DNA of 64,000 nucleotides from Macrostomum lignano (lineage: Eukaryota). Under the pieces are notes generated by a model that was given only the letters and a program-made list of their open reading frames with translations, searched no databases and was not told where the DNA came from. Position 1 is the first letter of the stretch. The number at the start of each line of letters is the position of its first letter. The stretch covers positions 1-64,000 of the forward strand of contig NIVC01001376.1 of assembly GCA_002269645.1 (NCBI GenBank), written 5' to 3'. Below are positions 2,396 through 51,727 of the stretch, piece by piece. A program made the position numbers and the translations under genes.

Positions 2396-5300
2396 CTATC
2401 CACTTGACATTTTTGCGATTCTGCAAACTTTATTTTCGACTTCCTCGATGTTCTCAGCGAACCAGGCTTTGATCCTCGGTAGGCTCTCTATCCTCCACTT
2501 GGCGTTGATGAGCACTTTCTCAAGAGACTGAGCCAGCGCGCGACCGAACTTCTTCAGATTTTCCTTGTTTTGCTTTTTGAAATTCAAGATCTCCGTGTAG
2601 TGCTCCAAATCGCTGAAAATGCCCAGGTAGCTTATGACATCAGACTGCATCAGTGGACTTGGAATTTTACTGTTTACATTCGTCCAATTCTTCTGCAAGT
2701 GGTTCCAGAAAGTCTGTAATCCATTAGGATTCTTGGCCATGCTTTCAAGCGCAAAGGCCATTTCCTGCATTCGAAAATGGCTGTCATTAGCTGGATGTTG
2801 GAGGTAATGCTCAAGAATCGATGGCTTGCTAGAGCAGGCAAGACCTGGGATGATGTCGATCTTAGTGCCTAGGTGAGAAACGGTCTTGCTGAGTGAGTCC
2901 CACTCCTGAGAACTCCCTTCAGCCCCCTCGCAGAGAACAGCTGGTCTAAAATCAGGATTGATCAGCGACCGAAACCCGGAATTCTCGTATTCTCTGAACT
3001 TCGCTTTCGCGGCATCTTTGCAGCTCGCCAATCCGTATTTGTACGCCGACGAAGTGATAAGCTCTCGCTTCAGCTTAGTCAGGTGGGTGTCCGTGTCTTT
3101 GTTTTCAAGCCCGACATCGTTGAAGGCTCCCTCGAGTAGATCTCGCATGTACGCATTCAGCGGTCCGTACTCAGAAGGCCGTGACTGCAGCATCGAGCGC
3201 AGGTAGCCAATCTTCGATAGAGCGGCCGACCACGGTGCTAAGTGCGTCTCCCTCTTCAGGTACTTGGTCATGTTGAGCGGAATGCTGTAGTCCAGATAGC
3301 CGGCACTGGCCAGAGCGAAGCTGTCATCGAGCAGACGAGCCCTGTCCTGCGGACTGAACACCGTGTGATTCGAGACCAGCTGATCGATGAGCCGCTTCCA
3401 GTTGTCCAAGTCGTAGTTCACTCTGTAGAAGCCGGACGAGCGAAGGTTGAGCAGATACCAGTCGTCAGCAGAGTTGTCGAGTTCGAAGGACTGCTCCTTC
3501 TCGGTCATCCAGTTCACAAAGCCCGACACGTCCTCAGGAGTTCCCGAGGTGAGGTTCCGCTTGGTTCCCATGGTGACAGGGATGATCCACGTGTAGTTGT
3601 AGTCGCTCAGGTAGCTCGGAACTTGACTGGCATTCCAGAGAAAGTGGTTCTGCGTCAGTGTGAGACGTCCAGTCGCAGTGACGAAACAGTTGAGCACGGG
3701 GTAGCCATCTGCTTGATCCAGCGATCCATCACTGAGCCGACGTCGAGAGACTTGTTTGTGGACTCGGAGTACTGCCGGGTCAGACTGTCATAGAGAGCGG
3801 TGTGGAATGTGTTTCCGTAGCTGTTCTGACGCAGGTAGTTTCCGACACCTTTGCGGAAGACCTCGTCACCAACGAACCCGTGAAGCATGCGGAGAATCAT
3901 TCCACCTTTAAAGTAAGTGATTGAGTCGAAGTTTTGGTAGATATTTATCAGTTGCTTGACTTCGAAGAAAATCGGATGACTGTTAGCCAGCGAATCTGTT
4001 TCCAGCGTCTTCAGCTTATAAGTCGCAACAAACTGAGCATCAAAATCCCAATCCGGTCGAATGTTGTTCACGCCAATGGTTAGCGCGAAACTAGCAAATC
4101 CTTCGTTCAGCCACAGGTCGTCCCACCATTGAGGAGTGACTAAGTTTCCAAACCACATGTGAGCGACCTCGTGACTGACAAGAAGTCCACTAAACTGGTA
4201 GTTGAAGGCCCTATCTTTTCGGTTGTCAATGGCAACGTAACTTTCACGATAGACAACTAGACCCCAGTTTTCCATGCCCCTTGAAGGAAAATCAGGAACA
4301 GCAATTTGGTCTTTTTTTTCAGCGGAAATCGAACATCAAAGTAGGATTCGAAGAACAGAGTTAGATTCTTTAGCGCGTCCTGTGAAAAGTTCATTATGTT
4401 TAGAAGCTCTGGTCTCACATAAGTGCGGTACGTTCGCATCTGAGAATCCGTGTCTTCAATGTATTCGAACTGAGAAACAACGAACGCAAGAATGTACGTG
4501 GACATGATGGGAGTGGTCTCAAAGTCTCCCTTCTCTACCTGATCCGAGTCGCTCATCTCGCTGAACCAATTGCTGGCCCTGGCTTTGGTGACTCGTTTCG
4601 ATGGCATGTTGCTGAGCGCAGTGAAACCCTTCTCTCTGACAATGCTGATGTCAAACCTGGCCTTGAATGCGGGCTCGTCGAAACACGGAAACACCATCCT
4701 GGCGTGAGATACTTGAAGCTGGGACGTCGCTAGGTACTTTGTGGTTCTCTTCTCGGTGTACGAGCTCAGGTACTAGCCTCGCAAACCGGATCGAAGCGGA
4801 GATCTGAAGCGTGGGATCTCGATCACGATGTTGGTGCTGTTCGCTGGCAGCGGCGCACACAGGTCGATGCTGCACCACTGACTATCGCTGTCGTACACAC
4901 AGTTGGCGATTGCGTAGTTTATGTCTAAGCAGCTGTCGTAGACCCGAAAATCCGCTGCGGTGAGTTTAATGTTCTCCGCCGAGTGCAGCTTGATGTTGCT
5001 AGTTGAGTCTTCGATGCTGAGTCTCACCTGCATGGAGCCGATGAAGTAGAACTCCAAGGCATTGCTCCCGTAGATGTAGGGCGCCAGGGTGACTGCATAG
5101 TGCAGTGGCTTCACTCCGGTCGGCAGGCGGACGTTAGGCGGAGGTTGCCCCGCATTTTTTGCCTTGGTCTCATTGGTGCAGGATGTAGGTGCAGGAGTTG
5201 CTGGGGTCGGAGCAGTGTCAGGCTGGCCATAAACAGGTCCTTCTGCGAGCAATAGCAGCAGTGCTAGGGCCGTTAGCAAGCGTTGCTTTGGTGATTTCAT
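2396..5300 (-). pseudogene. Intronless M1-family (aminopeptidase N/ERAP-like) zinc aminopeptidase with signal peptide, disrupted as assembled
   Basis: Four collinear ORFs join into one ~965-aa protein. It has a hydrophobic N-terminus (LLTALALLLLLAEG), VRLPTGVKPLHY, ARMVFPCFDEPAFKARF, xGMENWGL, HEVAH-x18-E (HEVAHMWFGNLVTPQWWDDLWLNE), catalytic Tyr in FDSITYFKGG and an ERAP1_C-like C-terminus. Lesions: in-frame TAG at 4773-4775 (GLRG*YLSSY), a 1-nt loss in an A8 run near 4312-4319, and a 1-nt loss at QM/GYP near 3706. Confidence 0.9.
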
Positions 5301-7867: not shown

Positions 7868-8080
7868 GCACAGGACATGGACTGGACTGGGGGGTCGCCA
7901 CACACACCCTCAATTACCCCAGCTAATGCTGGTAACCTTTTTACAACTGGGTGAACTGAAGCAATGCAGAGTTAAGTGTCTTGCTCAAGGACACAAGGAG
8001 ACCGAGTGGGTCGAGAATTGAATCCCCAACCTTTCAGTCATGAGTCCGAAGCTCTAACCACACTATAGGCTGCGACCCCA
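7868..8080 (-). mobile_element. tRNA-derived SINE (family A, CORE-like central domain), 3'-truncated
   Basis: Minus strand has a tRNA-like head (tagtgtggttagag...ggattcaattctc) followed by tgtgtccttgagcaagacacttaactc...tgcttcagttcacccagttgtaaaa. Clearly homologous to 27652-27970. Confidence 0.7.
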
Positions 8081-9110: not shown

Positions 9111-10821
9111 ATGATTTCGCAACTAATAATACTTTGTTTGCTATCCATCGGTAATATCCTAATCCATTTCGCAATTCACTTTGACCCAAATATCCCTGAA
9201 CTCCCAATTAATTAACTATAATTTCAGCCACCTGCGTGACTGCCAGCCAAGCTCCTGAGCAAGAGTACTACCTGGTCGATGAGCCCGTTACCATCAACGC
9301 CTCGGTGAGCAGCGAAGTGATCAATGTGACCGGGGTGGCTTCCGAGATCGACTGCGTGACGAGGTGCCTGTCGAGAGGCTGCTCGGTGGCGGTGGCTCAC
9401 GAGAGCATCGGGCTCTGCCAGATGGCGATGGTGTATGAAGGCGGCCACTCGTCCGGGAGTCGCGTGCAGAGGCTGCTGGGCTCGGAGGCCGGGGCCAGGG
9501 TCTGGACGTTCGACGCACCGCTAATTCACCTAAACTTCAGCATTGAGTTTCTCAGTAAGCACTTCTGCAACATTCCAAAGTTTCGTTAGATCTGCGAATA
9601 TTTATCTCTCAATGCTAAACTCCATCTTCCAGACTCCAGCACCGGTAGAAACGGCTCCATCCAGCAGCTGCTGATCGACACCACCCACTGCTACCGGATT
9701 GAAGCTGCCGGTGCCAGCGGGAGTCCCGGGGCTCGACAACCGAGCGGTCGAGGAGCAGTCATGGCAGGCAACTTCAGCCTGACTGCCGGCACCCTGCTGA
9801 CCATTGTTGTCGGACAGCAGGGCGGCCCCGCTAGCGATAAAGGCGGCGGAGGTGGCGGCGGAGGCAGCTTTGTGTACACTGTCAACGCCTCCGGCAACCC
9901 GCTGCTGCTGCTGGCTGCTGGCGGAGGCGGCGGTGGCTGCTACTATGAGGCTGGTAAGTGCCAGAGCAGGGTCTCGTCTGACTGCTGAATCACCTGTTTG
10001 AGATGAGAGCCCTCATGCGAACGCGAGCATTGGTTATCAAAGAAGAATGAAGCGGATTAAAAAAAATTAAAGAGATAATTAATAATTATTTTCTTGATTA
10101 GGACTCATTATTTGACATCATCAGGGTTGAATTATTTAACGAACGAGTGACTGAGCAAATTTAAAGTATGTACAGCTAGAGGAGAATGAGCAAAAGCAAT
10201 GACTGTGGCCCTAACCTTTGATTGATGGATTGGTTGATTGATTGATTGACTTATTGATTGATTGGTTATTTACAAGCTTACTACTTACTATTAGTAGTCA
10301 GTTATCAAAGTTAAAGCTCCTGTCGTGTTTCAAAATTCAGGTGCTGATGGCTCAGGAGACGAAAGAGGCACGAACTCAGTTGCTGGGGATTCTGATTACT
10401 CTGGCTACGGCGGCAGCAACGGTCAGGCCGGCTTCAGCAATTCTGATAATAATGACGAAGACTACTACCCCGGCGGCTGCGGCGCCGGCTGGTTTGGCAA
10501 GAATACCAACGCTAAAGCCACGCAGCACGACGGCGACCACGGTGGAAGCTTGGCTGACGGCTGGGTCGGCGGAGCCGTTAACACCAACTATAACGGCGGA
10601 ACCGGAGGGTTCGGAGGCGGCGGCGGTGGCGGCAGCACCCCACGAACGACAATGGCGGCGGCGGAGGCGGCGGCTTCAGCGGTGGCGGCGCCGCTGGCAA
10701 TCACGGTGGCGGAGGCGGCGGCTCCTTCTGCGGCGGCCGCGGCTGCGCCGCCACCAGCGGCGGCAACACCGGCAGCGACCAGGGCTTCGTCAAGGTGCAG
10801 TCGGTCCTGGATTGCGATTGA
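9111..10821 (+). CDS. Secreted PAN/apple + ALK/LTK-like glycine-rich-domain protein, copy 1 (exons 9111-9150, 9228-9554, 9633-9953, 10341-10821; 1-nt frameshift in exon 4)
   Basis: All introns are GT-AG and phase 1; internal exons are 327 and 321 nt. Signal peptide MISQLIILCLLSIATCVTA; PAN core [23 protein letters not shown]; GRD motifs [65 protein letters not shown] and GGFGGGGG. A frame break at the C4 run 10638-10641 is repaired by one added C, giving ...GFVKVQSVLDCD*. Confidence 0.85.
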
Positions 10822-10907
10822 ACAGTTTTGATGATAAAACAACTTTGGGTTGAGAATTCGAACGTTTTTGTCAATGTTATTTACCAGCCTAAGTAAGATT
10901 TCTAGTT

Positions 10908-11278
10908 AGTTAGAGGCAGGCGGTTGTGTGTAGCCTGGCGCACTTTAGGCGCGACATTGGCACACAACCGGCGAGAGCCATTACTGGCGCCCATTCCGCC
11001 GACTCCCCTGAGCAGGCACACAAGCCCGCGGATACGTACGCAGTCATACGCACAGGCACACACTCACACAGGAGTTTACAGCGGCCCTGACTTTATTTAT
11101 CGTTAGGCATGTACACTTCACTGTGCCTTGGGGGTTGGGCCTCAAAGACGTTAATTTCAGGAGCAGAGCCAAGCCGAGATTCCAATTCAGCCCCAAATTA
11201 ATGTGACTGCACTTGGAATCGAGCCTGGGCCGCTGGCACATCAGAGCGCCACGCTGGACCGCTGGGCTTCAGCCCCCT
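10908..11278 (-). mobile_element. tRNA-derived SINE (family B), near full length
   Basis: Minus strand: A-box-like gaagcccagcggt, B-box-like ggctcgattcc and a (CTAA)n tail. The 3' half matches 18643-18816 in the opposite orientation. Confidence 0.7.
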
Positions 11279-12605: not shown

Positions 12606-15600
12606 ATGATTTCGCAAATAGTACTACTTAGCCTGCTCTCCACCGGTAAGCTGCCTAATCCATTTCGCAATTCACTTTGACCCAAATATCCCTGAACTCC
12701 CAATTAATTAACTATAATTTCAGCCACCTGCGTGACTGCCAGCCAAGCTCCTGAGCAAGAGTACTACCTGGTCGATGAGCCCGTTACCATCAACGCCTCG
12801 GTGAGCAGCGAAGTGATCAATGTGACCGGGGTGGCTTCCGAGATCGACTGCGTGACGAGGTGCCTGTCGAGAGGCTGCTCGGTGGCGGTGGCTCACGAGA
12901 GCATCGGGCTCTGCCAGATGGCGATGGTGTATGAAGGCGGCCACTCGTCCGGTATTCGCGTGCAGAGGCTGCTGGGCTCGGAGGCCGGGGCCAGGGTCTG
13001 GACGTTCGACAAGATAAGCTCGGGACCTCGGGACAACAGGACTTTTATAAGTGAGCATTTATTTCTACTCTTTCACTTCGGCTTGTCTGGAAAGTCGAGA
13101 AAATGTGTGAAGCAAGCAAGAAAGAAGCAAGCTGTTGACGTGGTGGAAAAAGCTCAAGATCCTGACTTTATCGCCAGCCAAAGTAATAAAAGATCGTTGG
13201 CACAGTTCCCTAACAGCAGAAGTCGTAAATTTCAGACACCGGAACCGGCCGGACCGGCTCCATCCAGCAGCTGCTGATCAACTCCACCGGGTGCTACCGG
13301 ATCGAAGCTGCCGGTGCCAGCGGCGGCTCCAGCACAGCCAAATCAGGCGGTCGCGGAGCCGCCATGGCTGGCAACTTCAGCCTGACAGCCGGTATCCTGC
13401 TGACCATTGCTGTCGGACAGCAGGGCGGTGGATCGCTCAGCTGGGGCTACACAGGAGCTGGCGGAGGCGGGGGCAGCTTCGTGTACACATTTAACACGAC
13501 TGGTTTGCCAACACTGCTTCTGGCCGCCGGCGGTGGTGGAGGTGCCTGTTACACTACTAATGGTAATGATTTTAATGCGTGTTAATATACTCGAATAAGC
13601 CTCAGGGGTGGCATGCCAATGATCAAGGTGGAATGCTGAGGTACATGTAACAAAGCTTAAAGAGCTAATCTGGTATCTACACCTGATATCCTAGACTAGA
13701 ATTCTTGCTGAAAGGGGCTACTTTTCCTTCCTAATCCTAATCCTGGTAATTGTTGGTTTCACTTGAAAATTTGGACAAACATCTCAATGGGCCTGTCAAC
13801 TTAAGCTTATAAAGTGGCGCCCGAGTAACCTATGTACAAAAATGATACGTCATTCTGCTCACAATGACACTAGGAAGCTGGGTAGCTGGTTTTGGACACT
13901 AAGAGCAGAATGCCATATCATTTGAGTACATAGGTTACTGGGGCTCCACTTTATGAGCTTAAGTTGAGAGGCCCTTTATTTCAAGTAGTTTCACCAGAAC
14001 TGGTTTCAAGAATGTGAGCATGTGGTTTTTATTTTAACCTTTAGAAACTTCCGATTAATTAAGTACATGTATATTTTATCAGTGGGTGCAGATCAGAGTG
14101 TATGCATACACTTTCACTCATTGTATTACATACTCGTATAATATTACATAAAAATACATGCATCATGTTTTCGAAGCTGCAGGGGCGCTGTTACTAACTA
14201 CAAATTTTAAAGACCAGAATTTTCGACAACTCTAATTTCCACTTCGAAGAAAACTTGATGATGCACATTTATAAACTGCGAGCATATAGAGCTTTTCTAG
14301 TTTGCAGTTTACAGTTTTGTTGTTTGAATCTTAAAGATTATGGTTTGTAGCTAGTAGTTTGCAGTTGGTAGTTTGTAGATTGTTGTTTGCAGTTAGAAGT
14401 TTGCAGTTGGTAGTTTGTAGATTGTTGTTTGCAGTTAGAAGTTTGCAGTTGGTAGTTTGTCAGTTTGTTTGGAGTTTTTGGTTTGTAATTGGTACTTTGG
14501 TAGTTTGTAGTTGTTAGTTTGGAATTTGCAGTTTGTAGTTGGTGGATTGTAGTTGTTAATTTGTAGTTAGTAGTTTGCAGTTTGTATTTTGTAGTTTGTA
14601 GTTTTTAGCTTGTACGAAGTCTGTTTGTACATGTGGTAGCTAGTTTGTGAAGGTGCCTTCTTTCGATTTCGGTCTCATTTGATTTCTACGTTTTAAATTT
14701 GGTCTATGATCAATTGTTTCGATGATCAACACTTCGGAGTATGAGCTAGCAAATTCTTTGACAATTTAATTAAACCTGTCATCCCTTCCGAGCACTATGT
14801 GAGCTCCAATAAACAGTTTATTGAAAGCCTCAGCAACACCGCGATTAATCAAACTGACGGGCTTTATAGCTTTAATGTTGTTTCTCTTTTCACCAACATC
14901 CCTCTCGAATTCACCATTGAGCTGGCTGCTGATCTTGTGTATGAAAAGATCATCCACCTCCGTTCTCGAAAGCCACTTTTAAGAAGATGCTCATATTCGC
15001 CACCTCGGGCATCTTTCTTTTTTGGGACAAATATTACAGACAGATTGATGGTTGTGCCATGGGCAGCCCTCTTGCCCCAACCCTCGCTAAATTGTACATG
15101 GCCCATTGGGAAAAGGACTGGATGTCCCTCCCGTGTGCGCCTCGCTTCTACAAACGCTACGTGGATGACACGTTTGCGATCTTTGAGGATGAAACTAAGA
15201 AGAATGAATTTTTTAATGTGATAGAGGGGTATTTCGTTCTAGCTTGTTCCCACTGCTTAGTCACCAAATTTGTGGTAGGGCTATTTGGGTTATGGGCTTG
15301 TTTTAACGCTGACACCAAAGTAATAGGGATGTTGTCAATCCTAGAGATGCCACCAATTTGTGACGGGGTAAGTTCTGGGGGGGGGGAAGAGAGTATCTGA
15401 CTTATTAATTTCGGCTGCTGTTAACTTGGGTTCGGGGACTTGGGGATTTCTTGGATTTGGGGAACAGTATTCAAATTATACTACTTTAAGGAGTAAGCTT
15501 TAGAGAAACTCCTGGTAACGCGAGTGTTCGAGCGGCAAGACACTGTCTATTATTCTATATGCTAATATTAGTCCGAGGGAGGGCTGCACGGCGGACCAGA

Positions 15601-18600
15601 GTTGCCGGGGAAACGGGGCACTAATAGGGAATTTCAATGGCTAATATGCTGGCATAGAAGGTAAGGCACTTAATATGGGGGGTTTGAGTAGAGAGGCGGA
15701 ATGCCTATTAGAGGATTAGATAAGAAGGCAGGGCGCCTAATGAATGAAGGGGGGTTTAGGAATAGGCAGAACGCCTTAGAAGACAGAATGTCTGGGAAAG
15801 GAATGGGAAGAACGCTTTGGCAGACAGGACGTCTCGAAAGAATAGGCAGCACGCCTTGAAAGATAAAAAGGTCTGGAGAGGATAGGCAGAACGCTTGGGA
15901 TTGGACAGCTCGTCCTGGGGAAGGAAAGGCAGCAATGCTCCCCTATTGAAAAACACGTTCTAGTTATTGAAAGGCAAGACGCCTTTAAAGAAGGAAGACT
16001 GACTCACTGGCTATTTTTAGAACAGGCGCTCAATGGAGGCCAACTGGCAGCTTCAGCAAGCTTGCCAGGAACCAAGAGAGGAAAGGTTGGTCTTACTTCG
16101 CTGTTTATTTTTCATATATATAGTTTTTCTAGACAAAATGACGGACAAGTTTTGAAAAATCATAATAATTTTGGTGAGGCATTTGTGAATAATACGTCAA
16201 GTTGTTTAATAATGATTTGTCTAAAAGATTGATTAATTTGTTGCAAACAAGAATAGTTAAAAGGAAAAGAACAGAATCCGTGATTTACGTAAAAGATATA
16301 TTTCAGTACTAAAACAAGGCAAGGCATGCAAAAGATTATAGCTGTCTCATTAACATTTTTATCAATTCTACTCATGAGAATATCAAATTCACGGTGGAAG
16401 GTGGAAGCAGAAGACTTCCTTTCTTAGACATTGACGTTGATGCCACCAATGAAACTATTTCTACCAGCCGTGTTTAGGAAACCTAGTTTTACCGGGCTGA
16501 TGCTTAGATTCGATGCCCTGTGCCCTAGACAATGGAAGGTTGGATTGGTTCTTAGATTTGATGCCCTGTGCCCTAGACAATGGAAGGTTGGATTGGTTCT
16601 TAGATTTGATGCCCTGTGCCCTAGACAATGGAAGGTTGGATTGGTTCTTAGATTTGATGCCCTGTGCCCTAGACAATGGAAGGTTGGATTGGTTCTTAGA
16701 TTTGATGCCCTGTGCCCTAGACAATGGAAGGTTGGATTGGTTCTTAGATTCGATGCCCTGTGCCCTAGACAATGGAAGGTTGGATTGGTTCTTAGATTTG
16801 ATGCCCTGTGCCCTAGACAATGGAAGGTTGGATTGGTTCTTAGATTCGATGCCCTGTGCCCTAGACAATGGAAGGTTGGATTGGTTCTTAGATTTGATGC
16901 CCTGTGCCCTAGACAATGGAAGGTTGGATTGGTTCTTAGATTCGATGCCCTGTGCCCTAGACAATGGAAGGTTGGATTGGTTCTTAGATTTGATGCCCTG
17001 TGCCCTAGACAATGGAAGGTTGGATTGGTTCTTAGATTTGATGCCCTGTGCCCTAGACAATGGAAGGTTGGATTGGTTCTTAGATTTGATGCCCTGTGCC
17101 CTAGACAATGGAAGGTTGGATTGGTTCTTAGATTCGATGCCCTGTGCCCTAGACAATGGAAGGTTGGATTGGTTCTTAGATTTGATGCCCTGTGCCCTAG
17201 ACAATGGAAGGTTGGATTGGTTCTTAGATTTGATGCCCTGTGCCCTAGACAATGGAAGGTTGGATTGGTTCTTAGATTTGATGCCCTGTGCCCTAGACAA
17301 TGGAAGGTTGGATTGGTTCTTAGATTTGATGCCCTGTGCCCTAGACAATGGAAGGTTGGATTGGTTCTTAGATTTGATGCCCTGTGCCCTAGACAATGGA
17401 AGGTTGGATTGGTTCTTAGATTTGATGCCCTGTGCCCTAGACAATGGAAGGTTGGATTGGTTCTTAGATTTGATGCCCTGTGCCCTAGACAATGGAAGGT
17501 TGGATTGGTTCTTAGATTCGATGCCCTGTGCCCTAGACAATGGAAGGTTGGATTGGTTCTTAGATTTGATGCCCTGTGCCCTAGACAATGGAAGGTTGGA
17601 TTGGTTCTTAGATTTGATGCCCTGTGCCCTAGACAATGGAAGGTTGGATTGGTTCTTAGATTTGATGCCCTGTGCCCTAGACAATGGAAGGTTGGATTGG
17701 TTCTTAGATTCGATGCCCTGTGCCCTAGACAATGGAAGGTTGGATTGGTTCTTAGATTTGATGCCCTGTGCCCTAGACAATGGAAGGTTGGATTGGTTCT
17801 TAGATTTGATGCCCTGTGCCCTAGACAATGGAAGGTTGGATTGGTTCTTAGATTTGATGCCCTGTGCCCTAGACAATGGAAGGTTGGATTGGTTTTTAGA
17901 TTTGATGCCCTGTGCCCTAGACAATGGAAGGCTGGATTGGTTCTTAGATTTGATGCCCTGTGCCCTAGACAATGGAAGGTTGGATTGGTTCGCTGCTCTC
18001 TTCACCGGGCCTTTTCCATTTGCAGATCTTGGAGGCTTTTTCACAATGAAATTGAAATCCTCACCAATTTGCTCCGCTACAATGGCTACCCTAGGAACTT
18101 TGTGTTGAAAATAGTCAACTCTTTTCTCAATGACAAACTGACTGAACCCACTCAGATGAAAGTTCGTGAAACCACCTCTGATTGTCCCTTGATCACTTTA
18201 ACTTTCTTTGGTGTTCGCTCTATTGAGTTTAAAATAAAACTGAAAAGCTGCTCCGTAAAGACTTAAACGCTCAAATCCGTGTTGTGTTTCGCACTGAAAA
18301 GGTTGCTAAGTTTGTCTCTAGGCTGAAATCCAGTGTTCCTCGTCCTCTCGCGGCAGGTGTCATATATAAATTTATTTGCTCTGAGGATCAGAGCATCTCC
18401 TACATTGGAAAAACTAAACGACACCTGTACACGAGGGTCAGAGAGCACTGGCTAAAAAACTCTGCCATTAACGAACACCTGCTAACCTGCAACAGTTGTT
18501 GTGACGCTGACACACACGAGATGATTAAGGCTATTGACTTTTGCGATTAGAGATCACATGCTCTCGCCTCTGCCTATTAGAAGCCCTGTACATTAAAACG

Positions 18601-21600
18601 AGACAGCCCACGTTAAATACGAGTAACCAACTCGCGATGGGTAAAGTTAGGGCCGCAGTACACTCCTGTGTGAGTGTGTGCCTGCGTACGTATCCGCGCG
18701 CTTGTGTGCCTGCTCAGGGGAGTCGGCGGAATGGGCAGTAATGCCTCTCGCCGGTTGTGTGCCTATGTCGCTTAAAGTGCGCCAGGGTGCACACAGCCCC
18801 CTGCCTCTAATAAAAAAACTCGCGATGGGTGTGTAAGACTTCCTTTAGGCTTCGCCTATTCTTGACTAAGTTTGGTCTCTGTTTCCGTTCTGATCAATAT
18901 AGAGTTTCACTCGATCTTGAGCCTAAAAGATCTTGCAACAGAGATCGCAAGTTGTTGGCCAAGACTCGTGCCTGTAGCACAAATAACGAACAGTTGTCTT
19001 AGGATTTCCGTGAGTTGCACTGGAACTCTTGCTGTGGATTCTTCTCCGGGAAGCCTCATTTCGGGGCCGAGGCCGTGTCTATTTTAGAGAATTTTAGGTA
19101 CACGTCATCCCCCGCCGCTGATTAGCAACGGCGGGGTGCCAAAAACAGACGCAGTAACATTAGATTAGTGCGTTGCTACGGGGCGAGAGAGTTATTTGAT
19201 AACTGTTCGTTGGTCGCATCAGGCGATGGTTAAAGGTCAGTTCGGGGTTCATTATTCGAGCCGATTTGCACGTCAGACCACTCGTGCGTCCCTCGGTGAG
19301 TCGTGTCTTTTGCTCCCTGGGCCGATCCATGTACGTCACCGCTGACCCTGGCCTGTTGACCATTGCTCTGTCTCGCCCGCCAGTCGGGGTATCATGTCGT
19401 ATCGATTCTCCTGGCACCGCGCCGACTGACTCTGCCTGGTACCTCGGCCGATTTTGAAATCCCGTTTGGTCTGAAATCTTGGGGGAAAGTGACAATTAAG
19501 TTATTATCATATCTATGATTTATTTCGCTTTCTTGCCGTTCTTTTAATTTCTCTCACTTAAGTGTCTTATCTCTAAATTGAACTTTCGCCCCCTGGTTTT
19601 AGCTTCTTACTTTGCCCTTTAGCGAACCTTTTATTTTGTTCAGACTTTTCTTAATTTCTAATCCCTATAGGGTGGGGGATAGCCGTCAAATCAGCATATT
19701 TTAGTTGACCTTGCAAATAACCGGACTGGAACGAAATCGACGTACATTCTCCCCCTACCAATTGGTTCTATTTTCCATTAATATGTAAAAGTTTTCAAAC
19801 CATCAAAATTCAATAAAATTACATGTACTTTCATATTTTCTCTCTCCACTCACTATATATACTGTTTACTTGTCAAATCATTTGAGTTACTTACTTGACT
19901 TAGCTTCAGAGGGCTCCGTGCGTCCGGAAACAGCGAGGAGGCGTTGCCGCCCATTTCGCTAGCCCCTGGCGACCACGGGCAGCTAGTGCTGCGGTGTCGC
20001 GCAGGGAGTTCCGGTGGCGCCGGTGTCCGCAGCGCGGTGCCCCTCCGGAGAGTCCAGGAGGTGGATTGTCGCTCGCTCGGAAGCCCCTAGGTAGCGGACG
20101 AGCTGGCAGAGAATCTCGGGCCTGAAAACGTCGGGGAGGTCCGGGTTTGGGCCGAGGTAGGTGAGCCTGACGTGAGTAAAGGCGGGGCATTCAAAGATGA
20201 AGTGCTCCGCATTCTCGACACCGGAGAGGCAGAAAGGGCATTCCTCACTGCGGATTTTTCCCTGGAGGTAAAGATGCCTGGCAAAGCAGCCATGACCCGA
20301 GAGGGCCATGGTCACCGCCCTGATGTCCGTGCGGTTGAGTCCAAGCAGGGCCCTGCGCAGGGCGGAGGAAGGACAGGGGACAGCCGTGCGGGATTGCCGG
20401 CTGTCGGGGGCGTTAGCCCACCTCTCCCTGTGCTTAGAAGCCACCCACTGGTTGATCCGAGGGTGACAACGGCGATGGGGGTGGGGGCCACGGGCAGGGG
20501 ACCAGTGAATGAACCGGTCGAGCCAGCCTTGGCCAGGCGATCGGCCAGCTCGTTGCCGGGGTCACCCGAATGCCCGGGGATCCACTTTAGGGACACTTTG
20601 TTAGAGGCGCCTAAGCGGTTGAGCTGCCCGATGCAGTCGAGGACTGTACGCGAGCAGGTGGTGGTGCTCTCAAGGGCGTGAATCGCCGCTTGACTGTCCG
20701 AGTGGAGGGTAATTTCCTTCCCCCAGACGTGCTGATTGTACAGCTCCATGGCGCAGGAGCTGATGGCGAGAACTTTGTTCTGGAAGACGGTGGAGCAGGT
20801 GCCGGTGTGTTGGGAGAAGGTCGCCACAGTTCTCCCTCCAGACACGATGCAGTAGCCGTATCCAGAGGCGGAGTTGATTTGGGACCCGTCAGTGAAGCAG
20901 TGGATTTCATGGGGTTTCCAGTTGTCTCTCGCTTCATGGCGTGGTGGAATGCTGGTTTTGAATTTGAGCGGGGGGCAGAGCGTGGACGGGATTCCGTCCG
21001 AGAGGGTCAGCAGGCCTCTCGCTGCTTCCAGGTCTCGCAGGCTGAGGTCGCCATGCGGCCGGAGGTTCCGCTTTCTGAAGGCAAACTGCTTCTGGATTTG
21101 GACACCCGCGTCAAGCAGACGACGGGTGGTTTTCATAGCCTCCCCTCTAACAAAGAGGTCGAGGGGGGAATGTCCAAGAAGGAGTTCATGCCAGCGAAGG
21201 GCGTTGAGGGAGCCGCGCTCATGATAGCTCGACAAGCGCGGCCTTGCACCCTATTTAAAACCTCAAGAACCCCTTTCACCTCTAGGGCACTGTTCCAAAT
21301 GAGGCCGGCAAAGGAGATGGCCGGTCTAACAATGGCAGTGTAAATCCACCAGAGGCGGCGGGGGGTGAGGCCCCAGGTAGCACCGAAAGCTCTGCGGATC
21401 TGCGCGAGAGTCGCGTGAGCTTTGCGGACTTTGGTTTGGACGTGCGGGGTCCAGCTCAGCCTGTTGTCGAGAGTGACGCCCAGACATCTGGTTTGTTTCT
21501 CCATGGCAACAGGTTTGCCATTGAGGGAGAGCGGTTCGATCCTCCAGTTTCGGCGGCTGGTGAACATGATAGCCACGGTTTTAGACTCAGAGAACCTGAG

Positions 21601-24600
21601 ACCGCAGCTATGTGCCCAGCGCTCGGCACGGTGGATGAAGGCTTGAAGGAGGTCCCTGAGGACCGCGGGTGACGGTCCAGCCACAGTGGCGGTAACATCG
21701 TCCGCATAGCCGACCTTCTGAACTGGGTCCGGATGCGGGCTGCAAAGCAGCTCGTCCATGACTAAATTCCAGAGGATCGGGCTGAGGACTCCACCTTGCG
21801 GTCCGCCTTTCTGGACTTCCACGGAGCGTGAGTGTCCCAGGAGGTGCGAGGTGGAAGTACGATGGGAGACTATGTACATGATCCAGCGGGTGAGGTGCTC
21901 GTGCGTGCCCCGGGATTCCAGGGCTCCCCTAAAGGCTCCAAAGAGCACATTATTGAAAGCACCATCAATGTCGAGGAAAAGCGAGAGCGCGTATCCACTA
22001 CCAAGCACGGCGCGCTCCAGCTTGTCGACAATGGCGTGCAGCGCACTTTCGATGGAGCGTCCAGGACGAAAGGCGTGTTGATTGGGGGAGAGCGGGGAGT
22101 TCCTCAGCTCTACGAGGAGGAGGCGCCAGAGTACCAACCGTTCCATCAGTTTGAGGAAGAAAGATGTCAGACTGATGGGGCGGTAAGCTTTGACAGAGTG
22201 ATAGTCTCCCTTCCCTGGCTTGGGTATGAAGACCACCGTGGCCTCTTGCCAGGCTTTTGGCACGTACCCGAGGGTAATGCTGGCCTTGAAGAGGTTGCAG
22301 AGGAGACCAAGAAACCTGTAATTTTTAACTGCCTCATGGAGGAAGCCAGGATAAATGTTGTCAGGACCCGGAGACTTGAAAGGAGAGAAGGATTTTGCGG
22401 CGCGAGCCGTCCTCTCTAGTGATGATGGTCGAAGCCAGGATCTGTCCGCCGGAGAGTGGTCCGGTGGGCCTAGCTGCGGTGCGGCACGTGGGAAAGAGCT
22501 GGTGAGCATAATGTCCAGCGATTCCCCAGGGTTCTCAGCGAGCCGGCCGTCCGGTCTTTTAATGACTGAGAGCTTTGACATTTTGTCGAGGGTGAGGGCC
22601 TTAACTACGCGTGAAGTAAGGCGGGTGCCTTCTAACTCCGCGCAGTATTGGCGCCATTTGTCGGACTTGGCTTTCTTGGTTTCACGCTAAAAGTCGCGGA
22701 TCGCTTCTTGGTAGGCGGCCAGGTCAGCTGGGTCCTTGCTCTTGCGAGCTTTCCGCTGGAGGCACTTTGCCTTGCGCCGGAGGGATCCAAGCGCCGGGTG
22801 CCACCAGGTGCGGATTTTTTGCCTTTGTAGGCTTTAAGAGGACAGGAAGCCTCATGGGCTGTCAGGAAGGTCTTGCTGAGCAAGTCTGCAAGGTCATCCA
22901 CTTCCTGACAGGTGGTTGGAGTGACGGTAGACAGCTGATCTGTCTGGCATTTCAGGGTTTCCGTGAAAGCCGTCCAGTCAGTGTTCCGGATGTTCCTTTT
23001 CCACAGGATGTGAGGCTTGGGGCAAGAGGATTGCAATCGAAAACGAACGAAGCGATGGTCAGACAGAGACTCCTCTTCGTCCCACACCTCCCAGTCCTTG
23101 ACTAAAGGAGTCAAGCCATGAAAGACGAGGGTCACGTCGAGGGCCTCCGTCCATCGCCCGTTGTCAAAGGTGGGGGTTGCACCAATGTTGCAAAACTCAG
23201 TATTGGTGGTGCAGATGTAAGCAAGGAGTTCCTCGCCTCTGCTGCTGGAGGTATTACTGCCCCAGTGGGTGTGGTAAGCATTGACGTCGCCCGCCACCAG
23301 CAGCTCGAACCTACGGTTAGAGCAGTAGTCCACGAGGGAGATGAGGTTGGGTGGAACCGCGGGGCCATCGCCAGGGATATAGATCGAGCGATGATGACCG
23401 TTAGGTTGGTGATAATGTGGTTGGACTGAATGACACAGAGATCTCTGTCAGAGAGGTCCGGTCTGTGCCAAGCTTTGAGATGGGTAGACACGAACATGAC
23501 TGCTCTGGGGTTTTGGGGGTCTTGAAAACAGTCAAAACCAGCAGGAATATACAGAATCTTACTTTTCTTTGTCCAGGGCTCCTGGAGTAGGATAATGCCC
23601 GGTTTCACAAAGTTTGCCACCCGCATCAGGTTGGTCGAGGCCGCGATGCAATGGTGTAGGTTTAGCTGCAGGATGTCCACTCCGGGGAATCCACGAGTGG
23701 TCCGCGCAGCTTCCTGCCGGCTCAAGGCGAGTTGTGCAGGAGAGCCGCCTCTTCTGCCTCGCCGATATCACCAGGCTCCTGCTCCATGGGCTCCTCCCGG
23801 ATGGTCTCCTTGGTCGAGGGCGATGCCTCCACCTGGGCGGCATTCTCGCTCTCGGCCCGGTTTTCCGGGGGGGCGCAGTGGTGACACTGGGTTGGGGGTG
23901 GCTGCGGTTGTGGGCCTTGGCGGTGTCCAGCAGCTGCTTCGCGCGCTGAGTCAGACCAGAGCAGATAGTGTTCCGGGCGGGTTTCCGGCCCTTTCCACGT
24001 CCGCCTGTTGCTGCAGCTTTCGCGGCTTTCCCTCTGACAGGGTCCACGACCTCGGAGGGGTCGTGACGAACGGGAGCTTCTTTTCCTGGGCATTTCCGCC
24101 CGGCAGAGCCCCCGCTCGCCCGCTTACGTTTCTATGGGGGCGGTGGGCGGGTAGCGTCAGACTCAAAGCTAAAAAGCTGAATCTGCATCAGCCCGACAGG
24201 GATAAGGGACATGTCCGGGTAGCGGAGCATCCAGCTATCCGACAGTCCAAGAATAGCCGTGAAACCGTCTCCGCCTGGCTTGGAGATGGTCTCGTGAACT
24301 ACGACGCCATTAGCCGGTAGCTCCGGGTTGGTAGCCACTAGCAGGTGACGCAGCTCGTCGGCCTTGGTGATGCAGCTGCGAGCCGGGATCCAGGCACGGT
24401 GCCGGTGTGTCCGGGGTCGCTCGTCCTCCCTGTAGATAAACAGGTTTTCCAGCTCCGTACCCCAGTCGAAGGATTTTAGCACCTCGAGGAGCTGCTGTCC
24501 TGACTGGCTGTCGGCGGGCTGGATATGGATGGCTTGGTCCTCGACTTTCGTCTTTTGGACTGGAGTAGCGGTACCGCTCAAGGCCATCTTGACCAGGTGG

Positions 24601-26784
24601 GAGTCCAACCTGCGCCAGATAAGGTCGAGCTGTTCGGCCGTAAGAGGCGTCTCCTGGCCTTGAATAACCAGGGCCGGCTGCCTCTTGGCCATAGCCGCGT
24701 AGGTGCGCTTCGGCTTGGTGGTTTGGCCAGCACCCCCCGCTTTGGATCCCTCCACAGCCGTGGGAGCTTCCACACGGGCAGAGGTCCCGCCACGGGAGGG
24801 GCCAGCCGCACCAGGAGCTTCGGCGGCATCTGATGCATCTGACCGGCGCGCGGGGTCCACCCCCTTGTCGGATGTCGACTCCTCCGCGGGGTTCGCAGAG
24901 ATACCGGCACCCTCCTCGGAGGTGGCCGGAGGGGAGGCTTTCGCATTCCTCCGTTCCTCTGCTTTGCGCTGGAGAAAAGCTTTGTAGCGAGCAATGCTAC
25001 GGGCCTTCTTTTTTGAAATCTGAGGTCCGCTGTCCTGTTGTCCAGCCGCTCCGGCATTGTCCTGAGCGGCGGCAGGGGCTGACTGAGAGGCACCGGGGGT
25101 TCCGGTGTTGCGAATGTCCGGCTGGGCCGCGGTGCCAACCTCGGTTGGTGCTCCAGCAGCCTCGGACGTGATGGATGTAAGTGAATACTCCATGAGTCGC
25201 TGAAAGGCGAATGGGGACTAGAGGTGAGAAGCTGCTGGGCCGTAACCCCAAACCCACCAGCCAGGCCAAGAGGTAGCGACCGGGGGGTGGCTTAAGCCCG
25301 TACCGGCCCGACCGCTATCAACCGAGAAACTCCCCGGCTAAGAGCCCGGCTTGGAAAAACCAGAGGCCGAACCAAAGGACCATCAGCGCGGTACTACACT
25401 GGGCCCTTGAGGGAAGCAGGAGGACTGCCTCCGGAGCCTGCGGAGCCTGCGGACTGGCCGCATACCCTGTTAAGGTCAGAGGTTGATACCTGTTCCTCAG
25501 AGCCGTGGCCAGAGGTACCTGACACGCACAGGTTCACTTCCGGGCGGAGCCCGTACCCAACTTGGCCAACAGGCCACGGATGGGTTGCCGTCGCCGGAGC
25601 CCAGTCAGTCCAGCAGCCCTAGAGCTGCCTTGAACACATGCGGGGCGTGAACCCCTGGGTCGGTTTGCGAGTCAGCTTGGAGAGAGTTCTCCTGCCATTC
25701 CTGCACCAGAATAGAGGGGGTGCAGGTGTGTAGGATCGCAGACCTTAGCTCGTAGGCCTGGTCTGTCTCATGCTATACAGGCGTGCTGAACCCACCTTGC
25801 ATGCTGCTAAATCATTTGGTTTTCAAATAAATTTCGACCCTGAAGATGTCCAATAGTTGGACGAAATGCATCGGAATTTCAAATAAATATAACTAACACT
25901 TCATGTTGATATTGAATTTAATTATCTATACTCTATTAAGCGAGCCACTTTACCTGATTTCTAGTCTGTGAAATTTCTAGTCCCTTGCTGCATAGTTAAA
26001 TCTAATTTCACAAGCTTGTTGTTACAATTAAACCATAGGCTCAAAATCACTGATAAAAAACAAGCAAAATTCTATACAGCCTTGAGACTTGAATAAGCCG
26101 TATATCTCCTACAATTATGGAATATTGATGAAGAATTTGTTAATTGTACCAACGGTATCTTCATCGAAAAGATTTCTAGCTCGATACTACAACTAATAAG
26201 TTATTTTTATCGATCCTTGTCGGTCTCTAGCACTGCATTTCTATGAAAAATCCTTCCTTCTGCTTCAGCTGTCCATGACTCTACTACTCTCCATGTTTGA
26301 TATTTCAGGCGCCGCCGGTTCTGGAGGAACATCCGGTACGGCTTCGATACCCGGTGACACTCCATACTACGGCTACGGAGGAGCGAATGGCCAGCCCGGA
26401 TCCAACAACCCCGCTGGAAGGAAAACAGGCTCTTACGTCGGTGGCTGCGGCGCCGGGTGGCTGGGAAAGGCAGCAAACCCACCAAGTAACATGTACGATG
26501 GAGGTCGAGGCGGCAGTCTGGCTGATGGCTGGATTTGTGACAGCGCTGGGACTGCTGGCGGCTTCGGTGGCGGAGGCGGAGGAGCTAATTACCCGGTGAC
26601 GAGTCTCAACGCCGGTGGCGGTGGCGGTGGCTACAGCGGCGGCGGTGCCGGCGTCGCTGGCAATCACGGCGGCGGAGGCGGCGGCTCCTTCTGTGGCGGC
26701 AGCGGCTGCGCCGCCACCAGCGGCGGCAACACTGGCAGCGACCAGGGCTTCGTCAAGGTGTGGCCGATTGATCAATGCAATTAG
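12606..26784 (+). CDS. Secreted PAN/apple + ALK/LTK-like glycine-rich-domain protein, copy 2 (exons 12606-12645, 12724-13050, 13236-13562, 26309-26784)
   Basis: Same 4-exon phase-1 architecture. Signal [19 protein letters not shown]. Exon 3 ends ACYTTNG|gtaat and no exon 4 follows nearby. The orphan exon after tatttcag at 26309 (GAAGSGG...[12 protein letters not shown]) is in the right phase and orientation. No stops or frameshifts in the joined CDS. The 12.7-kb join is inferred. Confidence 0.78.
13789..13974. mobile_element. MITE with ~72-bp imperfect terminal inverted repeats (GGGCC ends, PIF/Harbinger-like)
   Basis: gggcctgtcaacttaagcttataaagtgg...cattctgctc is mirrored by gagcagaatg...agcttaagttgagaggccc with about 8 mismatches. 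No clear TSD. Confidence 0.7.
14335..14625. repeat. Low-complexity GT-rich tandem repeat (tagtttgcagttgg-type modules)
   Basis: Repeated agtttgcagttggtagtttgtagattgttgtttgc units and degenerate variants. Confidence 0.75.
15217..16349. mobile_element. Solo LTR (1133 bp) inserted in the Penelope RT
   Basis: Starts TGTGATAG and ends CTGTCTCA (TG...CA with imperfect terminal IR). Flanked by TTAA at 15213-15216 and 16350-16353. Removing it restores the RT frame ([18 protein letters not shown]). Confidence 0.75.
16503..17990 (+). repeat. 48-bp tandem array, 31 near-identical copies, derived from Penelope RT coding sequence
   Basis: Unit cttagatt(t/c)gatgccctgtgccctagacaatggaaggttggattggtt encodes [16 protein letters not shown]. 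1488/48 = 31. Flanked in frame by [10 protein letters not shown] and RCSLHRAF. Confidence 0.95.
18643..18816 (+). mobile_element. 5'-truncated SINE family B copy with A-rich tail and 14-bp TSD
   Basis: TSD aactcgcgatgggt at 18629-18642 and 18817-18830, tail ctctaataaaaa. Matches the 3' half of 10908-11278. Confidence 0.85.
19983..23725 (-). pseudogene. LINE ORF2: AP endonuclease, reverse transcriptase, RNase H, CCHC finger (frameshifted)
   Basis: [32 protein letters not shown]; RT motifs [59 protein letters not shown]; RNase [31 protein letters not shown]; SGHG...CPFC...AEHFIFEC. Confidence 0.92.
23722..25193 (-). pseudogene. LINE ORF1 (gag-like, DUF4780-like segment), frameshifted near the C-terminus
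   Basis: 353-aa ORF 24132..25193 has a low-complexity N-terminus and [13 protein letters not shown]...GLMQIQLF, which resembles LOA ORF1 proteins. It continues in other frames to ~23722. Confidence 0.6.
25838..25876 (+). ncRNA. Minimal type I hammerhead-ribozyme-like motif (degenerate stem I)
   Basis: cc-CTGAAGA-t-gtccaa(tag)ttggac-GAAA-tgca-TC-gg: core CUGANGA/GAAA/UH with a 6-bp stem II and a palindromic short stem III. Stem I is only ~2 bp. Confidence 0.4.
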
Positions 26785-27651: not shown

Positions 27652-27970
27652 AATAATAATAATAATAATTGTTTGCACCTACCCCAATTGGGCCAGATGT
27701 GCAACCGACAGCTCAGCCGCAGCTATTTGCACGGCGCATCTGAAGGCTGCGCACGGCTGTTCAGTCCAAGGACTGGGGGGGGGGGGGGGTCGCCACACAC
27801 CCTGAATTACCACAGCCAATGCTGGCACCCATTTTACAGCTGGGTGAACTGAAGCAGTGTAGAGTAAATTGTCTTGCTTAAGGACACAAATTGTTCCAGT
27901 GTGATCGGGAATCGAACCCCCGACCTTCAAGTCGTACGTGAGTCCGATGCTCTAACGACTGGGCTACACC
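27652..27970 (-). mobile_element. tRNA-derived SINE family A, full length, (ATT)n tail
   Basis: A box tggtgtagcccagtcgttag, B box ggttcgattcc, CORE-like tgtgtccttaagcaagac...ttcagttcacccagctgtaaaatgggt, and a tail. 7-bp TSD acgcgat at 27645-27651 and 27971-27977. Confidence 0.8.
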
Positions 27971-39999: not shown

Positions 40000-42012
40000 A
40001 CATGACGCTTCTTTTGATTTTTACATGACGCTTCTTTTATTCTTCCATTATTCTTCTTAATTTTTTAAATGACACTTTCATTAGTTTTTATATGAGGCTT
40101 CTATGATTGTTTGCATGACGCTTCTATGATTTTTACATGACGCTACTATGATTTTTACATGACGCTTCTATGATTTTTACAGGACGCTTCTATGATTTTT
40201 TAAATGACGCTTCTATGATTTTTTACATGACGCTTCTATGATTTTTTACATGACGCTTCTATGCTTGTTTACATGACGCTTCTATGATTTTTTCATGACG
40301 CTTCTATGATTTTTTACATGACGCTTCTATGATTTTTTCATGACGCTTCTATGATTGTTTACATGACGCTTCTATGATTGTTTACATGACGCTTCTATGA
40401 ATTTTTACATGACGCTTCTATGATTTTACCATGACGCTTCTATTATTGTTTGCATGACGCTTCTATGATTTTTACATGACGCTACTATGATTTTTACATG
40501 ACGCTTCTATGATTTTTTCATGACGCTTCTATGATTTTTTACATGACGCTTCTATGATTTTTTCATGACGCTTCTATGATTTTTGCATGACGCTTCTATG
40601 ATTAATACATGACGCTTTTATTATTTTTTCATGACGCTTCCATGATTTTTTCATGACGCTTCTATGATTTTTTTTGACGCTTTTTTTACTTTTACATGAC
40701 GCTTCTATGATTGTTTGCATGACGCTTCTATGATTGTTTACATGATGCTTCTTTTATTCTTGCATTATTCTTCTTAATTTTTTAAATGACACTTTCATTA
40801 GTTTTTATATGAGGCTTCTATGATTGTTTGCATGACGCTTCTATGATTTTACCATGACGCTTCTATTATTGTTTGCATGACGCTTCTATGATTTTTACAT
40901 GACGCTACTATGATTTTTACATGACGCTTCTATGATTTTTTCATGACGCTTCTATGATTTTTTCATGACGCTTCTATGATTTTTTATGACGCTATTTTGA
41001 CTTTTACATGACGCTTCTATGATTTTTTCATGACGCTTCCATGATTTTTTCATGACGCTTCTATGATTTTTTATGACGCTTTTTTGACTTTTACATGACG
41101 CTTCTATGATTTTTACATGAGGCTTCTATGATTTTTTCATGAAGCTTCTATGATTTTTTATGACGCTTTTATGACTTTTACATGACGCTTCTATTATTGT
41201 TTACATGACGCTTCTATATTTTTTTAAATGACGCTTCTACGATTTTTTACATGACGCTTCTATGATTCTTTAAATGACGCTTCTATGATTTTTATAAGAC
41301 GCTTTTACGCTTTTTTACATGGCGCTTCTATGATTGTTTACATGACGCTTCTATGATTTTTTACATGACCCTTCTATGATTTTTTACATGACGCCTCTAT
41401 GATTTTTATAAGACGCTTTTACGATTTTTTACATGGCGCTTCTATGATTGTTTACATGACGCTTCTATGATTTTTTACATGACCCTTCTATGATTTTTTA
41501 CATGACGCCTCTATGATTTTTTAAATGACGCTTCTATGATTTTTATACGGCGCTTCTATGATTGTTTACATGACGCTTCTATGATTTTTTACATGACGCT
41601 TCTATGATTTTTACATGAGGCTTCTATGATTTTTTCATGACGCTTCTATGATTTTTTATGACGCTTTTATGACTTTTACATGACGCTTCTATGATTGTTT
41701 ACATGACGCTTCTATGATTGTTTACATGACGCTTCTATTATTGTTTACATGACGCTTCTATATTTTTTTAAATGACGCTTCTACGATTTTTTTACATGAC
41801 GCTTCTATGATTCTTTAAATGACGCTTTTATGATTTTTTACATGGCGCTTCTATGATTGTTTACATGACGCTTCTATGATTGTTTACATGACGCTTCTAT
41901 GATTTTTTACATGACCCTTCTATGATGTTTTACATGACGCTTCTATGATTTTTTAAATGACGCTTCTATGATTGTTTACATGACGCTTCTACGATTTTTA
42001 ACATGACGCTTC
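40000..42012. repeat. 20-21-bp satellite (catgacgcttctatgattttta), ~2 kb
   Basis: Roughly 90-95 tandem units. A ~120-bp interruption is duplicated at ~40020 and ~40745, and a few seed units occur at 38575-38680. Confidence 0.93.
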
Positions 42013-51040: not shown

Positions 51041-51325
51041 GCGATCTGCTGCGCCGTCGGCGACTCCAGCTGGCAGGCCACGTCATCCGCGCCGAGGCCT
51101 ACTGTCCGGAGCCGGTGCAGGAGGTGCTGCTACTTACGTTGCAGGCACCCTACCGGCGGGGACAGGCGAGGACTCGGCGCTACGTCGACTGTCTGCTGGC
51201 TGACGCCGGCGCCCCGGACTCTGCCGGCGGTGCGGCTTTTGTTCGCGCCCAAGCTTTGAAGCGCGCCATCTAACGCTGCTTTTGTGATCTGGCAGCGTAC
51301 TCTGTTGTTGTGTTGTTGTTGTTGC
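51041..51325 (+). mobile_element. 5'-truncated RTE-clade LINE end inserted in the left foldback arm
   Basis: DLLRRRRLQLAGHVIRAE...RGQARTRRYVDCLLADAG...KRAI* followed by a (TGT)n tail. The matching site in the right arm (~53240) is empty. Confidence 0.82.
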
Positions 51326-51727
51326 AGTAGAAAAATCGACGTTTGTTAATATTAATTCGCTTGCATGTAATTTGAAAACAAAATTTACAGGAATAAGGGT
51401 TCCTGTGTTCAACGTTCAACAAAGCTTCTAAGGCATATTTGTTGTGCTACTGTGAATTGCTGTGCTGGCCTATGCACTAGAGACTAGACTAAACAAGTGA
51501 AGGCTTCGTGTACAAGATAAATGAAAGGAGCTTTTCTTAAATTTCTTGTGCATTATTATGTGATTGCTTAAGTAATTTTGTTCTATAGTTTAGAGCCTGT
51601 CACGTGTCAGTTAATTAATAATACAGGCATTTGAAATATAAATGTAGGTCTAATATTATTAGAAGTAACTTATAAGCTGCTTTCATTCAATTATAAAAAG
51701 GCTTCAATTCAATTAAATTCTATTATC

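Follow-up and report, generated by a model that had tools for sequence, protein, structure and literature searches.

Layered gene conversion as the best explanation of segmental identity among three linked PAN-like/glycine-rich genes of Macrostomum lignano

Introduction

Interlocus conversion and concerted evolution are known from the gene clusters that encode globins, MHC proteins, opsins, and KIRs. In these clusters, linked paralogues that have diverged from one another share tracts of near-identity a few hundred bases long. Introns and synonymous sites are covered by the tracts as well, and neighboring segments of the same gene give incongruent relationships. All of this is true also of three genes, c1, c2, and c3, in the flatworm Macrostomum lignano. 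Then there are the systems that generate diversity, such as conversion from pseudogenes in chicken immunoglobulin V genes, the VSG mosaics of trypanosomes, and the FREPs of snails, where, as in c1, segments of a gene match different members of its family.

The three genes lie within a stretch of 64,000 nucleotides (assembly GCA_002269645.1, contig NIVC01001376.1, positions 1 to 64,000), which I call the window. An initial annotation saw c1 as a mosaic put together from its two neighbors and compared it with the second kind of system. I will argue that this likeness is only superficial and that the flatworm cluster of c1 to c3 is a clean, well-bounded case of interlocus gene conversion in layers.

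The cluster and its repeats

The cluster occupies 25 kb and consists of three paralogous genes of four exons each, modeled by tblastn and by reading splice sites. All of their introns are in phase 1. Two of the genes are in tandem on the + strand: c1 (9111-10821; exons 9111-9150, 9228-9554, 9633-9953, and 10341-10821, set by splice sites and translation) and c2 (12606-26784; exons 12606-12645, 12724-13050, 13236-13562, and 26309-26784). The third, c3, is inverted and lies on the - strand (30373-33219; exons 33219-33180, 33104-32709, 31532-31212, and 30863-30373). The 64-kb window contains no additional copies or fragments of the gene, no Ns, and no repeats linking the three loci other than the tracts described below, and a tRNA scan found no tRNA genes in it. 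From their sequences the three appear to be old paralogues with backbones that diverged anciently, and divergence among the copies is at or near saturation in the introns, in the untranslated regions, and in the 5' part of exon 4. A Thr/Pro-rich linker of 27 codons is present in c3 and lacking in c1.

Intron 3 of c2 is 12.7 kb long and contains satellites and a LINE. The latter (19983-25193, - strand) is a GC-rich (~58-60%) non-LTR retrotransposon whose open reading frames code for endonuclease, reverse transcriptase, and RNase H; the former include a 48-bp satellite in 31 copies with 98% matches (16503-17991) and a 7/42-bp array of the GTTTGTA type (14335-14614). Intron 2 is 1176 bp in c3 as against 78 bp in c1, because of a block at 31656-32442 in which a 23-bp G-run satellite (31833-32276) sits between two blocks of a 16-bp repeat (31656-31802 and 32328-32442). 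The whole looks like a foldback or transposon-like insertion.

Short interspersed repeats that are 80-85% identical to one another are found at 7889-8061, 27784-27959, 10910-11095, and 18642-18810, one of them directly downstream of c1. Related repeats (76-85%) occur at a second M. lignano locus, L001 (NIVC01000100.1, 849196-881104), at its positions 4043-4165, 14836-14958, and 31197-31452. Farther along the window, a large inverted structure at 50838-53432 is built of 20-bp repeats of the CCCTGGCTTC type: 51322-52046 is about 90% identical to the reverse complement of 52468-53256, and the 181-bp arms (50838-51018 and 53252-53432) are 99% identical. At 40000-42013, about 90 copies of a 23-bp unit form an AT-rich satellite that is strongly skewed in AT and GC.

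The encoded proteins

In the encoded protein, a signal peptide is followed by an N-terminal domain of about 95 amino acids with four cysteines, and after a variable linker comes a glycine-rich domain. The products of c1 to c3 would be small, secreted, and devoid of transmembrane and kinase parts. The glycine-rich domain is of the type found in the receptors ALK and LTK (TG/GRD), judging by sequence and by a modeled relative. It matches PF12810 (ALK/LTK glycine-rich) with 28.4 bits in c2, against a cut-off of 24.5, and with only 12.1 bits in c3, and it has a weak sequence match in PDB to the C. elegans ALK homologue SCD-2 (7lir, E 0.008). In the AlphaFold model of the M. lignano homologue P0005, this domain has a pLDDT of 70-90 and matches ALK (7nx4, E 2.5e-9) and LTK (7nx1, E 9.5e-9), i.e. 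the TNF-like plus poly-Gly fold, a match that pertains to a relative 39% identical to c3 and 44% to c2 and not to a protein of the window. The poly-Gly blocks of the ALK/LTK domain are conserved, as are the motifs GxGAGW and SF(V/C). Unlike ALK and LTK, the window proteins are predicted to be secreted and kinase-less, with the GRD fused to a PAN-like domain, an architecture shared with proteins of corals and Nematostella. Closest to the family are M. lignano proteins at 39-44% identity, and protein searches found none above 44%. A family that has the ALK/LTK ligand-binding fold minus the kinase is uncharacterised and may merit its own study.

The name PAN, given to the N-terminal domain in the initial annotation, is defensible only by way of intermediates. 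Pfam returns no hit at E ≤ 5 for this domain from c1/c2 or from c3. Alignment with coral PAN_1 by hhalign is not significant (E 0.043, probability 1%), with the cysteines in register, and a profile search of PDB with the domain gave only chance hits. A single-sequence model of the PAN exon has a pLDDT of 39.7, too low for use, and the N-terminal domain of the P0005 model (pLDDT 50-69) gives weak hits to the PAN/apple lectin SML-2 (E 0.7). The domain does have phmmer matches to P0132 (1.6e-14), P0133 (6e-6), and P0136 (4e-4). In P0133 and P0136, a PAN_1 (PF00024) hit overlaps the matched region and is followed by PF12810. P0133 has 22.6 bits, with the cut-off at 21.4. In P0132, PAN_1 is listed at residues 619-675, and the best matched stretch is elsewhere (92-171). 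The four cysteines are invariant and were compared with the PAN/Apple pattern C-x3-C-x4-C...C. I call the domain PAN-like, in the sense of a divergent PAN/Apple-like domain, a name that is indirectly supported.

Two tracts with different partners

Tract A of c1 (9158-9514, + strand) consists of 70 nt at the end of intron 1 together with the PAN-like domain in full, and it agrees with c2 (12654-13010, + strand) at 355 of 357 positions, intron sequence included, just as had been read by eye. The tract starts 8 nt past the donor site of intron 1, includes the acceptor, and ends at the last codon of WTFD, within exon 2. Directly beyond both edges, ungapped identity between c1 and c2 drops to random. 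That the right edge falls at the end of the domain has a simple cause: the linker beyond it is not homologous among the three copies. In intron 1, c1 and c2 are identical over 70 nt, whereas intron 1 of c3 cannot be aligned. Elsewhere the two genes are far apart, with identities of 80% in exon 1, 73% in exon 3, and 68% in exon 4, and beyond the 13 nt that precede the ATG no homology can be detected. The annotation was thus correct also in calling their signal exons, their upstream DNA, and their exons 3 and 4 diverged.

The only mismatches in tract A are at 9457 (G/T) and 9459 (G/T), and c1 carries the c3 base at both. These two differences, 2 nt apart, are best read as a single multi-nucleotide change in c2 that took place after the event, and tract A is therefore essentially one mutation old.

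Past the end of tract A, c1 takes on the likeness of c3. The tail of its exon 2 with the donor site (9525-9560, + strand) is homologous to c3 32738-32703, with 31 of 36 positions the same (LNFSIEFL vs LNFSREFF), and the tail of exon 2 in c2 is unrelated to it. Then comes tract B (9613-9943, + strand), comprising the last 20 nt of intron 2 and all of exon 3 but its last 10 nt, the part that codes for the start of the glycine-rich domain. Its partner is c3 31222-31552 (- strand). Over these 331 bp, c1 is 95.8% identical to c3 and 74% identical to c2 (blastn), and six of the 14 mismatches with c3 are clustered at 9727-9737. The acceptor region of intron 2, TGCTAAACTCCATCTTCCAG, accounts for the 20 intron nucleotides, all identical in c1 and c3. 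The switch of likeness just past WTFD and the common acceptor context had both been pointed out before and hold up on alignment; to call exon 3 near-identical in c1 and c3 is right as to high similarity and slightly generous in wording, since 300 of 321 positions agree over the exon as a whole. The divergence within the tracts, 0.56% in A vs 4.2% in B, differs eight-fold.

Incongruence along the genes

The alignment of the three copies has 1187 gap-free columns, 424 of them polymorphic. To the left of 9514, 105 sites pair c1 with c2 and 7 pair it with c3; between 9515 and 9943, 7 pair it with c2 and 83 with c3 (Fisher p = 2.5e-39 for the switch of partner at 9514). Exon 4 gives a star-like picture, its site patterns numbering 40, 56, and 51. 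The longest concordant runs among the 424 sites are 85 for c1 with c2 and 23 for c1 with c3, while the maximal runs in 10,000 permutations reached only 14 and 13, respectively (P ≤ 1e-4 for both pairs), so that chance can be excluded. Together with the identities of the segments, these counts confirm that relationships among the copies are incongruent from one segment to the next.

Divergence at synonymous sites (dS) separates the segments by depth. It is 0 to 0.03 between c1 and c2 in tract A, where the PAN-like 5' half has 0, and 0.11 between c1 and c3 in tract B, where c1 and c2 differ by 0.73. It is 0.27-0.31 in the 3' half of the PAN-like domain for c3 vs c1 or c2 and 0.25-0.47 at the 3' end of exon 4 for all pairs. 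It rises to 0.73-0.80 in exon 3 for c2 vs c1 or c3, to 1.41 in the 5' half of the PAN-like domain for c3 vs c1 or c2, and to 0.95-3.1 in the 5' part of exon 4 for all pairs.

Two of these segments are alike in all three genes. One is the 3' half of the PAN-like domain (CSVAVAH...WTFD), an older homogenised patch in which c3 (32831-32965, - strand) is about 93% identical to c1 and c2. The other is the 3' part of exon 4 (c1 10645-10797, + strand; 88.9% identical to c2 26608-26760), which is either homogenised or highly conserved in the three copies; the low dS of this Gly-rich end could in part reflect a preference for the codon GGC and not conversion. GC3 is 0.80-0.91 in the patches that all three copies share (9380-9514, 10645-10797, and their c2 and c3 counterparts) and 0.54-0.78 in the other domain-coding segments (the PAN 5' half, exon 3, and the 5' part of exon 4). 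This peak is consistent with GC-biased conversion, and codon preference in Gly-rich sequence could also explain it.

A frameshift in c1 and a neighboring aminopeptidase

A run of four Cs in exon 4 of c1 (10638-10641, + strand) is one base short of what the frame of c2 and c3 requires. Read without correction, the last ~60 conserved residues are replaced by an Ala/Pro-rich tail that ends at a stop at 10829-10831. The conserved C-terminus and the shared stop (TGA, 10819-10821) can be read only after a 1-nt change of frame, and from there the frame is intact to that stop. It is hard to see c1 as an old pseudogene, given the intact frame past the shift and a pN/pS of 0.30 on its branch in exon 4, which shows purifying selection, and I reject that idea. 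The shift may be very recent or it may be an error of assembly.

A similar lesion is found upstream of c1, in an M1 aminopeptidase gene (2396-5300, - strand). At about 3695-3711 (- strand), one G has been lost from a run of Gs, giving ATGGCTAC in place of ATGGGCTAC at the conserved motif WIKQM-GYPV and splitting the open reading frame. The aminopeptidase homologues of M. lignano read straight through this motif. The lesion marks either a pseudogene or a homopolymer error of assembly. Because the aminopeptidase has a one-base loss so similar, a homopolymer error is a real possibility for c1 as well.

The aminopeptidase is 86-98% identical to protein fragments from M. lignano and, at the nucleotide level, 92% identical to a copy at the edge of L001. 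Four or more aminopeptidase genes stand in tandem at this locus; three of them are 76-78% identical in nucleotides to the window gene, and the fourth is the edge copy at 92%. No PAN/GRD gene lies within the 32 kb of L001. Since M. lignano is a neopolyploid and has two subgenomes (PMC10733133), the window and L001 may be homeologous regions.

Probable gene conversion in layers

I propose, with considerable confidence, that these patterns are best explained by two or more interlocus gene conversions, each of a short tract and differing in age, layered within the three-gene cluster. Short stretches would have been copied between the genes by interlocus (non-allelic) conversion, presumably when a break in one copy was repaired off the template of a paralogue, as in synthesis-dependent strand annealing. 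The first event, very recent, would have involved c1 and c2 and 357 bp of intron 1 and the PAN-like domain. The second, older and now 4.2% diverged, would have involved c1 and c3 or a c3-like gene and about 331 bp of the intron 2 acceptor and exon 3. Still other exchanges may lie behind the older patches that the three copies have in common, one in the PAN-like domain (3' half) and one in exon 4 (3' end). The tracts stop where alignable homology ends, in the indel-rich linker past WTFD and inside introns. I infer that the events were non-reciprocal. Exon 4, the introns, and the flanks of c1 are its own, and c1 is therefore a gene that existed already, with stretches copied into it or out of it.

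Conversion tracts in animals are typically of the length seen here, 357 and 331 bp. The partners of c1 are within reach, c2 at 3.5 kb in direct orientation and c3 at about 22 kb in inverted orientation. On the other side, what lies left of tract A is exon 1, 80% identical and with just one identical stretch of 18 nt, little anchor for a strictly homology-driven event, and the real conversion partners could be paralogues beyond the window; both points count against the proposal. The tracts are also known from a single assembly that apparently has indel errors. Searches of the literature turned up nothing on the PAN-like/GRD family or on gene conversion in Macrostomum.

Of the two processes named in the initial annotation, gene conversion or module shuffling among paralogues, the first is strongly supported by the change of closest relative from segment to segment and the second is not supported. 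Nor does the direction it gave to the exchanges, from c2 and from c3 into c1, follow from the data. The sequences are symmetric inside the tracts, the star-like exon 4 leaves c1 with no backbone affinity by which to polarise events, and the comparison covers three sequences; the database relatives that might serve as an outgroup are at most 44% identical, and a protein search with the PAN exon alone found no match. It stands at somewhat less than an even chance that the same process ran with c1 as the donor in one or both events, giving its PAN-like domain to c2, its exon 3 to c3, or both. In that case c1 would not be a mosaic built from c2 and c3. That c1 agrees with c3 at both mismatches of tract A is compatible with a subsequent change in c2, whichever way the copy went. 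The affinities of c1 beyond the young tracts, with its tail 86% identical to c3 and its exon 1 80% identical to c2, speak for c1 as a repeated recipient, but not decisively, as this double affinity is equally that of an old relative of both.

It is very improbable that c1 is a chimeric gene, made from c2-like and c3-like parents by exon shuffling at the level of DNA or by unequal or inverted crossing-over. One might be led to this idea by the rough match of the tracts to one domain (PAN-like) and one exon (exon 3). Yet the divergences of 0.56% and 4.2% indicate that the tracts did not arise in one event; exon 4, introns 2 and 3, and the flanks of c1 match neither neighbor; and the edges of the tracts lie in exon 2, in exon 3, or a few bases into introns and do not look like intronic recombination joints.

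Assembly or polishing could also produce false identity, if reads of one paralogue were used for another or if two loci or haplotypes were joined. The seeming single-base homopolymer errors, in the C4 run of c1 and at WIKQM-GYPV of the aminopeptidase, give some cause for this suspicion, but errors of that kind are indels and cannot make 357 bp of substitution-level identity between flanks that do not align. With copies about 70-75% identical elsewhere, reads would not cross-map in polishing. The contig carries the tract twice in direct orientation (an A-R-B-R-C arrangement), which leaves a single assembly path unless there are more copies elsewhere; the window has no Ns or joins; and 4% divergence in tract B is a natural pattern. 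I consider an artefact highly improbable.

Finally, strong purifying selection on the PAN-like domain and exon 3, with no exchange at all, can be dismissed: the proteins are indeed constrained, with pN/pS below 1 throughout, but constraint on protein is rejected as the source of identity that extends to introns (70 + 20 nt, with intron 1 of c3 unalignable beside the 70) and to synonymous sites (dS of 0 between c1 and c2 in the PAN-like 5' half vs 1.41 to c3), with the closest relative switching between segments.

Homogenisation or diversification

If layered conversion is at work in the cluster, does it create new combinations of PAN and GRD, as in diversified recognition families? This had been suggested in the initial annotation, and the evidence does not support it. 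Estimates of pN/pS are below 1 in every segment long enough to give one; the pairs at or above 1 come only from 7-14 codons in the tail of exon 2 and from the last 7 codons. Pairwise dN/dS is 0.14-0.38 in the variable segments, and the branches of exon 4 have pN/pS of 0.30, 0.30, and 0.95, where the 0.95 is based on just 20 changes. On balance the conversion events have made the copies more alike, and the ends of the tracts are where homology ends and not at exon-shuffling junctions.

The wider family in M. lignano shows the segmental pattern of the window at the level of protein. Among the paralogues P0002, P0003, P0004, and P0009, identity is 91-98% in the PAN-like domain and where the GRD begins, and 73-87% in the middle of the GRD, equivalent to the 5' part of exon 4. 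From such sequences a family-wide organisation with a constant frame and a variable middle seems possible. One may go further and imagine that PAN-like/GRD genes are a large, fast-evolving family of secreted Macrostomum proteins, in which repeated conversion of short tracts preserves the uniformity of the PAN-like domain and of the first part of the GRD and reassorts them against a variable mid-GRD, giving combinations for recognition. I think this quite unlikely. If true, there would be functionally distinct PAN-like/GRD combinations that serve recognition, for example in reproduction or immunity.

Implications and comparison with known systems

Layered conversion has practical consequences for anyone working with these genes. 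Trees and calls of orthology in the PAN-like/GRD family must be made segment by segment. Short-read mapping and counts of expression are ambiguous between c1 and c2 across the PAN-like exon. An attempt to date the duplications that gave rise to c1, c2, and c3 by the divergence of whole genes would mislead.

How, then, should the cluster be classed? Unlike the immunoglobulin V, VSG, and FREP systems, it has three copies in a 64-kb window and no bank of pseudogene donors there. Unlike them, its genes have pN/pS below 1 and the events lessen the differences between copies, and there is no evidence here of somatic or programmed exchange. It differs from the globin, MHC, opsin, and KIR clusters in being known from three sequences of a single assembly, and in belonging to an uncharacterised family. 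With those same clusters it shares the layering of events of different ages and homogenised patches of raised GC3. Layered interlocus conversion of this kind is patchy concerted evolution, a known process that calls for no new mechanism.
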